This document shows positions 32,395-34,792 of a DNA stretch of 64,000 nucleotides, piece by piece; position 1 is the first letter of the stretch, and the number at the start of each line of letters is the position of its first letter. The stretch comes from Ostrea edulis. Lineage: Eukaryota. The notes beneath the pieces are model-generated. The model was not told the DNA's origin and did no database searches. It was given only the letters and a program-made list of their open reading frames with translations. The DNA lies in contig NC_079168.1 in the NCBI RefSeq assembly GCF_947568905.1, positions 69,130,001 to 69,194,000 of the forward strand, in the 5' to 3' direction. Both the position numbers and the translations under genes were made by a program.

Positions 32395-33621
32395 ATGCCC
32401 CGGGGATTTCTCGTTAAAAGGACGAACCACGGAGGAGCCGCGTCCTACAGGGAGAGAAGAACGTCAGAGGATGATCGCCTGGACCTGGAACCGGACATTA
32501 AAAGATTCGGATCTCCGGATTCTGGATACTGCGCCAGTCCTATCAATTTCTCAAAAGATCTAGAGAATAACAACTACGAGAAACCGCAGTGCTCTCCCCT
32601 GTCAGTGAGTACACAACAACTGTACTTTTCAAATTTTGAGCAGTTAAGTGTCAAGTCTCCAAATAACGAGAAATCGTCTCCTAAACCACTGGAACAAAGC
32701 AGCCCCAATAAGAGAAGAAACGAAATTAAGAGCAAGTCTATTAAGAAGCCAAAAGCGGCTCGGAAGATAAATTTTGATGAGGACACGACCTCTCCAGTTT
32801 CGGGCTGTATCATAAAGCATGTTTCTCCAGAGGAAGAAGGAACGGTGATTTACCATGGTGACATTGACAGCACGTACAACTTCGTAGAAGCAACCCCAGA
32901 GGCCCGTGCTGAGATCGAGAAAATCGAGAACAAAATCGGCGACTACATCTGCCAATTGTGCAAAGAATTTTACGAGGATGCGTTTCAACTGGCCCAACAT
33001 CGATGTTCCCGCATCGTCCACGTGGAGTACCGATGTCCGGAATGCGGTAAAGTTTTCAACTGTCCGGCCAACCTTGCGTCTCATAGGAGATGGCATAAAC
33101 CGCGACCTGCGGCAAACAGCAATAGGCAGAGCGCTCCCGCCAAAATTCTCCCCTCAAACCAGAATACTGAAAACAACGGGAACCAAAATGAGGCAAAAAT
33201 TGACAACGCCATGTTCTTGATCCCGACCGATCTCAGCATTTCCAACGACGAAGGGCAGTATAAGTGTGAAACATGTGGAAAGAAATTTCGCCGACAAGCT
33301 TATTTGAGAAAACATCGTCAAACCCACAGTGACTCCACGAAAATCACGCGCAACGACAATTCAACACGACAAGAAATTCTGCGTATCAGCAATTTGAACG
33401 AATTGTCAAACCGAGATTCCGTGCGTCGCGAGATGGTGTCCCCTCTGAATGCCTTTGAGAGTTTGCAGACGAGAGTTCCGGATATGTACGTGTGTAAGCA
33501 CTGCGAGAGTTCGTTCAGCAGTTCTCCAGGATTGACCCGACACATCAACAAATGCCATCCATCCGAGAATCGACAGGTCATCCTGCTTCAAATGCCCTCC
33601 ACCCTTCCCCGCCATATGTAG
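32395..33621 (+). CDS. INSM1: Insulinoma-associated protein (INSM1/IA-1; nerfin/egl-46 family), intronless, 408 aa
   Basis: N-terminal SNAG MPRGFLVKR; KKPKAARKINF..TTSPVSG block; ZF1 CQLCKE..LAQHRC; ZF2 CPECGKVFNCPANLASHRRWH; ZF3 KKFRRQAYLRKH; last finger SSPGLTRHINKCHPSENRQVILLQ. Confidence 0.98.
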   Translation: MPRGFLVKRTNHGGAASYRERRTSEDDRLDLEPDIKRFGSPDSGYCASPINFSKDLENNNYEKPQCSPLSVSTQQLYFSNFEQLSVKSPNNEKSSPKPLEQSSPNKRRNEIKSKSIKKPKAARKINFDEDTTSPVSGCIIKHVSPEEEGTVIYHGDIDSTYNFVEATPEARAEIEKIENKIGDYICQLCKEFYEDAFQLAQHRCSRIVHVEYRCPECGKVFNCPANLASHRRWHKPRPAANSNRQSAPAKILPSNQNTENNGNQNEAKIDNAMFLIPTDLSISNDEGQYKCETCGKKFRRQAYLRKHRQTHSDSTKITRNDNSTRQEILRISNLNELSNRDSVRREMVSPLNAFESLQTRVPDMYVCKHCESSFSSSPGLTRHINKCHPSENRQVILLQMPSTLPRHM

Positions 33622-34792
33622 ACATGATAGAACGGTGCCTTACACACCGTGTGTGCCTGACTGCCAGAAAAAAATGTATATTTTTATGATGAACTTTTTG
33701 ATATGAACGTGCATATGTGCCTTTCCCTTCATATTTACATGTGTGATTGCTTGTCATTTTATTTTAGATATATTTTTATTTTATTTATTTCAAGAAGGTA
33801 TATTTTAGGAGTATTACTATATACAATTTATTATTTACATGATTATCAAGTATTTTAAATGAACTTATTATTATGTTGTTTTAATGCATTATTTTATTAT
33901 TTACGGTAATAATCATTATATTTATTTCAGATATTTTATTTTTACAAAGAGGATATGTGCAATAGTATTTTTACGACAGTGCAATGATCAAGTGCAATAT
34001 TTAAATTATCAATGTTTTAGTGCGCTGTGAAAAGTGTAATACTTAAATTATCAATGTTTTAGTGCGCTGTGACAAGTGTAATATTTGAATTATCTGTTTT
34101 AGTGCAATGATATTCCAGGTGCAATATATCTTCAAGTGCAATATTACAATAGAGATCTATTTTATTGATTCTTATATTTTTATGTCGTACTACAGTGTGA
34201 TAATTATTTTTTTGTCTAGGCTGGGCAAGTGCAATCTAACTTATTCTATTTATATAGTCATCTAGTGGTAGAATTTAGTATTAGTATTAGTGTTGGTATT
34301 TCTCTTTTGGGTTAAGTTTGGGTTTACCTGAACATTGATTATATATATTTAAAAAAAAACCACCCGAAATTCTAACAAAGCGTAATCTTTGTCAAACGAA
34401 TACAAAATCTGTACATTAACTCGGTTTGTTGCTTTTTGTGTTGTGTCTATTATTTACATTAATTGTTTTCATTTTGAAACATTTCAGAGTTTTATTTCAT
34501 CACAAGGTTTTAAAGTAACTAGATTATGTTGTTTAATTTGTTATGTTTATCCTTATTTATTTATTTTTTGCCTTTTATGCAGATTCTTTATCATTTCATT
34601 TAGAATTCCGATTTGTTTGTTTGTTATTAATTCCTTGGTTTTATTATCTGCATACATTGGAGAGAGAGAAAGAGAAAGAAAGAGAGAAAGAGAGAGCGAT
34701 AAGTGAAATGTTTTATGAATAACAAATGCTGTATTTTCATTCGCCCATTGTGACCCTTGTACTTTATAAGAGATGCATTGTTACTTAATAAA
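33622..34792 (+). promoter_or_regulatory. Insm 3'UTR (AU-rich, miRNA seed clusters) ending at AATAAA 34787-34792
   Basis: U-rich tracts, 7 GTGCAAT, 2 GTGCCTT and 2 TGTGAT; first canonical AATAAA I found after the stop. The UTR end is inferred. Confidence 0.6.

Follow-up and report, generated by a model that had tools for sequence, protein, structure and literature searches.

Why should the sequence that follows an oyster Insm gene, a regulator of neural differentiation, contain the same 7-mer seven times within 279 nt, and is this array a genuine regulatory element or an accident of local duplication? The motif, GTGCAAT, is the perfect complement of nt 2–8 of the microRNA miR-92 (seed AUUGCAC). 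A sequence-only reading of a 64,000-nt stretch of the Ostrea edulis genome (NC_079168.1, positions 69,130,001 to 69,194,000; hereafter the window, with coordinates counted from its first nucleotide) had drawn attention to these motifs and had proposed that they form a strong miR-92 switch on Insm, or a sponge-like untranslated region, which was partly built by a local tandem duplication of about 43 bp. In this study, we revisited this array by examining its sequence context, its conservation in other bivalves and its pairing with published miR-92 sequences. The array has been kept on the same strand across bivalves and ends in one site that can pair with almost the whole microRNA, and we consider it probably a real and ancient on/off switch, although its inclusion in the Insm mRNA and its function are inferred from sequence alone.

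RESULTS

The array lies downstream of an Insm orthologue

The gene preceding the array is a single-exon ORF of 408 codons on the + strand (32395–33621, stop codon TAG at 33619–33621). Its product starts with the SNAG-like motif MPRGFLVKR and contains C2H2 zinc fingers, as detected with Pfam. The best named homologues are the insulinoma-associated protein 1a-like proteins of Saccostrea, Pecten, Haliotis and others; homologues named insulinoma-associated protein were found in molluscs, a brachiopod, hemichordates and arthropods with E values down to 1e-230, and the closest are oyster proteins with 84–97% identity. The ORF is therefore an orthologue of the Insm/nerfin-1 family.

The observation made in the sequence-only reading held exactly. 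GTGCAAT is present on the + strand at 33957, 33979, 33992, 34102, 34119, 34136 and 34229, that is 336–608 nt after the stop codon, with start-to-start spacings of 22, 13, 110, 17, 17 and 93 nt. Four of the matches are followed by A and are hence 8mers, namely site 1 (33957–33964, GTGCAATA), site 3 (33992–33999), site 5 (34119–34126) and site 6 (34136–34143), while site 2 (33979–33985), site 4 (34102–34108) and the seed match of the last site (34229–34235) are 7mer-m8 matches. The other six matches in the window are scattered over both strands and the total of 13 is not above the 9.1 expected from shuffled sequence, so the signal is the local clustering. In the interval 33793–35121, seven matches compare with 0.14 expected from a first-order Markov model, and GTGCAAT is the most frequent 7-mer in this interval.

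The only AATAAA or ATTAAA hexamer between the stop codon and +2.6 kb is an AATAAA at 34787–34792, a likely poly(A) signal. It lies in a block of about 140 nt (34720–34860), and about 70 nt on each side of it are conserved in three other oysters (L008, L001 and Saccostrea; L numbers denote the orthologous loci retrieved for comparison). This conservation continues further past the hexamer than a simple downstream element would need. A (GA)n tract is present slightly upstream (34660–34696), and GA repeats are also prominent at the equivalent place in L008, L001, L004-6, where the contigs end in the tract, and Saccostrea. The array is therefore located between the stop codon and a conserved putative poly(A) signal, and we refer to this region as the presumed 3′UTR. 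In an index of sequencing runs, one labelled RNA run contained only 6% of the sampled words of 33930–34330 and a run that is only guessed to be RNA contained 29%, a poor representation which neither supports nor refutes transcription of the array.

Six of the sites are conserved among oysters and predate the local duplication

The orthologous regions of four other oysters carry seven (L008), six (L001), six (L004-6) and five (L007, Saccostrea echinata) sites at the same distance from the stop codon. In the five-oyster alignment the sites stand out as invariant islands in otherwise diverged AT-rich sequence: for the six core sites, which are all except site 4, 41 of 42 columns are invariant compared with 126 of 466 other columns (Fisher P about 1e-20). 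The single exception is in site 1, which is orthologous in four of the five oysters but reads GTGCATT in Saccostrea. The 17-nt spacing between sites 5 and 6 is kept in all five oysters, as is the roughly 13-nt spacing between sites 2 and 3. Positions 33755–33792 were left out of these conservation counts and of the expectation counts given here, but were included in the alignment itself, in the list of sites and in the 7-mer scan described below, the latter two covering the whole 1.5 kb after the stop codon.

Tandem Repeats Finder reported a 42-bp repeat at 33990–34105 (2.8 copies, 90% matches) and a 17-bp repeat at 34101–34144, and together these cover four of the seven sites. Site 3 heads the first copy of the 42-bp repeat, copies 2 and 3 carry the decayed motif GTGTAAT at 34034 and 34076, and site 4 lies at the tail of the third copy. 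Outside this window the 42-bp repeat was found only in the closest relative, L008, which has two copies with both seed matches intact, and it is absent from the three more distant oysters. The duplication is therefore recent. It contributed one intact site, site 4, which has no counterpart in the other oysters, and two decaying copies of the motif, whereas six of the seven sites are orthologous across five oysters and so predate it. The array was thus not mainly built by the local duplication, contrary to the emphasis of the sequence-only reading.

Similar arrays are present in other bivalve lineages

Within 1.5 kb after the Insm stop codon, we found seven sites in Pinctada imbricata, eight in another bivalve (L017/L018), 16 in Dreissena polymorpha and nine in Potamilus streckersoni, compared with three in Haliotis rubra, two in Lingula anatina and only one canonical site in Pecten maximus. 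Arrays are present in eight of nine bivalves, but are not universal. The expected number is 0.07–0.21 per 1.5 kb, and all 77 sites in the 12 species are on the sense strand, with none on the opposite strand within 1.5 kb. One condition set beforehand for rejecting the proposal, namely that orthologues lack the sites, is therefore not fulfilled. The Dreissena sites are spaced 13–15 nt apart within about 230 nt (L014, 5834–6066) and were built from a diverged 28/84-bp repeat in which the seed match is kept while the spacers vary; the Pinctada array contains a 17-bp repeat, and no tandem repeat was detectable in Potamilus. As part of the site count in this window, Dreissena and Pinctada comes from tandem duplication, the counts overstate the number of independent events; however, this does not affect the orthologous oyster sites or the repeat-free Potamilus array. 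Since the repeat units differ between lineages, site number has been renewed independently.

To avoid a bias towards miR-92, we also asked which 7-mers with at least two G/C are shared by all eight lineages, counting the five oysters once. Only three were returned, GTGCAAT, the overlapping TGCAATA, and GTGCCTT, which is the seed match of miR-124 (molluscan sequence in PMC7328434). In the window, GTGCCTT is found at 33635–33642, where it is followed by A (8mer) and lies 14 nt after the stop codon, and at 33717–33723 (7mer-m8). The columns of the first match are invariant in five oysters, and this match sits in a possible CGGUG/CACCG hairpin that is likewise invariant in these oysters. GTGCCTT is present in every lineage examined, from oysters to Lingula, mostly close to the stop codon, with two copies in all bivalves except Dreissena, which has one. 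In addition, TGTGATA at 34196–34202, a possible 7mer-A1 match to the miR-2 family (sequence in PMC7328434), is conserved at the equivalent position in all five oysters in the spacer before the last miR-92 site, but was not found in the other bivalves.

The base following the miR-92 seed match, where an A is a signature of Argonaute, is A in 81% of oyster sites and 87% of Pinctada/L017 sites, compared with a background of about 30%, and the two bases preceding the match are A in 81% and 74% of oyster sites. Of 62 gaps between neighbouring sites, 43 are 13–35 nt and none is shorter than 13 nt, a range that is associated with cooperative repression. The array RNA is not predicted to be structured (fold z-score +1.2); no Rfam family was matched at gathering scores in the window, and only chance-level hits were obtained in 33800–34900. 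A miR-92 precursor or another known structured RNA was rejected on these grounds.

The terminal site extends into the complement of the 3′ half of miR-92

The last site (34216–34236) differs from the others, a feature that had not been noticed in the sequence-only reading. Here, GGCTGGG (34219–34225) pairs with miRNA nt 13–19, CAA faces nt 9–11, GTGCAAT (34229–34235) pairs with the seed, and nt 12 of the miRNA is bulged. These assignments are based on miR-92 sequences of other bivalves, which share UCCCGGCC at nt 12–19, namely Tegillarca reads mapped on a C. gigas scaffold (PMC3972184) and C. gigas miR-92b, 92-3p and 92c (PMC4778033 supplement); the seed AUUGCAC is present in C. gigas, Tegillarca and Biomphalaria miR-92 sequences. 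The duplex energy of the terminal site is −26 to −33 kcal/mol in this window and −27 to −36 kcal/mol in the other oysters, compared with −9 to −21 kcal/mol for the other sites. The 3′ part alone gives −14 to −16 kcal/mol here and −13 to −20 kcal/mol (−13.1 to −20.2) over all seven species, with 7–9 contiguous G:C-rich pairs starting at nt 13 or 14.

[quoted passage not shown] Its seed match is a 7mer-m8 in this window and in Saccostrea, and an 8mer in L008, L001, L004, Pinctada and L017. The site lies outside any repeat, and about 70 nt around it are the best-conserved part of the distal UTR. The L017 and L018 contigs, which come from two different runs, both stop 12 nt after this site, through either a transcript end or an assembly break. 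The site is absent from Dreissena, Potamilus, Haliotis and Lingula; in Pecten, GGCTGGGGCGACAGTGCAGT, about 1591 nt after the stop codon, looks like a diverged copy with a G:U pair in the seed and is a possible relic. In every UTR that has the site, the GGCYGGG element, the complement of the miRNA 3′ half, occurs once and only there, and the chance of finding it at a given offset is about 6e-6 at this base composition. This identifies miR-92 as the partner and rules out explanations based only on a 7-mer.

DISCUSSION

We suggest that the stretch is a conserved array of target sites for the miR-92 family in the presumed 3′UTR of the oyster Insm gene, a reading that we hold with good confidence. 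Six sites are ancestral to oysters and one more came from a recent 42-bp duplication. The sites sit 13–24 nt apart in two groups, and this packing suggests that several Argonaute–miR-92 complexes load on one mRNA and repress it jointly, so that Insm protein would be made only where miR-92 is low. About 90 nt further on, the terminal site is predicted to bind far more tightly and would either anchor the complex on the mRNA or, as in target-directed miRNA degradation (TDMD), destroy miR-92 once Insm mRNA accumulates. What our analysis establishes is the presence of the sites, their strand, their enrichment, their conservation and their pairing with published bivalve miR-92 sequences; that the array is included in the mRNA, that it mediates miRNA-dependent and cooperative repression, and that it has any effect on miR-92 levels, including a ZSWIM8-dependent loss, is inferred. 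The interpretation given in the sequence-only reading is therefore supported in part: the sites lie downstream of a real Insm orthologue, are far above chance and are kept by orthologues, but the role ascribed to the duplication and the sponge alternative are not borne out, and the parallel drawn with fly nerfin-1 is one of logic only.

What the terminal site may do is less certain. According to a review of TDMD (PMC10899785, section 11), trigger sites combine seed pairing, at least six contiguous 3′ pairs starting at nt 12–13, 3′ energies of −9.6 to −17.1 kcal/mol, and an unpaired centre that breaks pairing at nt 9–10. The first three features are present. For the fourth, the result depends on the paralogue considered: with C. 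gigas miR-92b, which is the most abundant family member in the C. gigas gill small-RNA libraries of PMC4778033, nt 9, 10 and 12 are unpaired, with 92-3p and 92c the break is partial, and with miR-92 forms that read CACUUG only nt 12 is bulged, which is less than the 3–11 nt loops of validated triggers. The conservation around the site, its retention in Pinctada and L017, and the fact that in flies the miR-310 family, which shares this seed, is under TDMD control through marge are in agreement with a trigger; however, in this window the site is only a 7mer-m8 with a G:U pair in the 3′ helix, and it is missing from several lineages. A TDMD trigger thus remains a tentative proposal, which would refine rather than exclude the main explanation, and we regard a high-affinity anchor as somewhat more likely, though also less than an even bet. 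Cleavage by Argonaute, as for HOXB8 and miR-196, would give rapid and irreversible removal of Insm mRNA. With the Tegillarca-type miR-92, nt 2–11 and 13–21 pair and the scissile position 10–11 lies inside a helix; but every lineage keeps a one-nucleotide deficit opposite nt 12 or 13, all three published C. gigas members mismatch at nt 9 and/or 10, and six further seed-only sites would be superfluous, so that slicing appears very unlikely.

Explanations that do not involve repression by miR-92 fare worse still. A neutral AT-rich minisatellite, with the motif count as a by-product of replication slippage, might be suggested by the repeats in this window, Dreissena and Pinctada and by the two duplicated copies that have already lost the motif, but it is hard to reconcile with six sites that are orthologous in five oysters while the spacers between them diverge, with repeat units that are unrelated between lineages yet all carry the same 7-mer, with the repeat-free Potamilus array and with a terminal site outside any repeat, and we rejected it. 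GCAAT is a C/EBP half-site and homotypic clusters are typical of enhancers, and the motif could alternatively be the target of an RNA-binding protein. However, the strict sense-strand polarity, the enrichment of A after the motif, the two bases before it, which are mostly A in oysters where the C/EBP consensus needs T then G/T, and the extension into the complement of the miR-92 3′ half, which neither reading explains, led us to consider both as highly unlikely, and C/EBP-type DNA sites were rejected on strand polarity and flanking bases. A passive sponge that titrates miR-92 away from other targets could draw on seven to sixteen sites per molecule, but miR-92 members are among the abundant miRNAs in bivalve libraries, with 10^4–10^5 reads or more, RNA runs contain very little of this locus, and a transiently expressed transcription-factor mRNA is, by inference, unlikely to reach titrating amounts. 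The only plausible way for this mRNA to affect miR-92 is the TDMD-like terminal site.

The closest known case is Drosophila nerfin-1, the Insm orthologue, whose mRNA is held silent in neural progenitors through many miRNA sites in its 3′UTR. It carries 12 sites for neuroblast-enriched miRNAs, including a homotypic set of five miR-279 sites and a validated miR-9 interaction (PMC12064045). miR-92a/b are among the most neuroblast-enriched miRNAs in that study, yet its TargetScan counts list no miR-92a site in nerfin-1, and no extended-complementarity site is reported for nerfin-1 in the text consulted. The bivalve UTR, in contrast, is dominated by one miRNA family with 5–16 sites, and no miR-9 match was found in any of the 12 regions. 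Classical multi-site switches, such as lin-4/lin-14, let-7/lin-41 and hbl-1, and let-7/HMGA2, likewise have several sites for one miRNA in the 3′UTR of a developmental regulator, conserved across species and giving switch-like timing; here the miRNA–target pair is different, site number is maintained through turnover by unrelated tandem duplications in different lineages, and the array ends in a near-complete complement. Compared with the TDMD triggers Cyrano/miR-7, NREP/miR-29b, marge/miR-310 family and ago1/miR-999, the terminal site shares the seed match, the contiguous 3′ pairs, the energy range, the local conservation beyond the seed and the location in a (presumed) non-coding part of the transcript, but its central unpaired region is shorter, 1 nt or a 2+1 nt interrupted loop depending on the paralogue, and it is preceded by an array of ordinary sites for the same miRNA. 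INSM1 is listed among the predicted targets of human miR-124-3p (PMC10185633), and targeting by miR-124 is a prediction only in both cases. Literature searches on Insm and miR-92, on oyster Insm and miRNAs, and on miR-92 expression in trochophores or Platynereis returned nothing relevant, and we found no report of a miR-92/Insm link in molluscs or elsewhere.

Insm is a conserved regulator of neural and neuroendocrine differentiation. Here one miRNA family has kept 5–16 sites on the same gene in lineages that separated in the early Palaeozoic, and the renewal of site number by unrelated duplications is unusually clear evidence for selection on site number and not just on site presence. This provides a defined and testable miRNA–target pair in molluscs, where almost no miRNA target is validated, and the terminal site is a concrete candidate for target-directed miRNA degradation outside vertebrates, flies and nematodes. 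It is possible, though doubtful on present evidence, that the Insm mRNA of pteriomorph bivalves is both a heavily repressed miR-92 target and a trigger of miR-92 decay: miR-92 would hold Insm off until Insm transcription outruns it and would then be cleared, giving a bistable, irreversible commitment switch. This would be the first TDMD trigger proposed in Lophotrochozoa, and an example of a target-site array and a trigger for the same miRNA combined in one UTR. In our model the two miR-124 sites would shut Insm off again in mature neurons, and the combination of miR-92 and miR-124 sites suggests a simple timing model for neurogenesis, in which Insm expression would be confined to a short developmental window.
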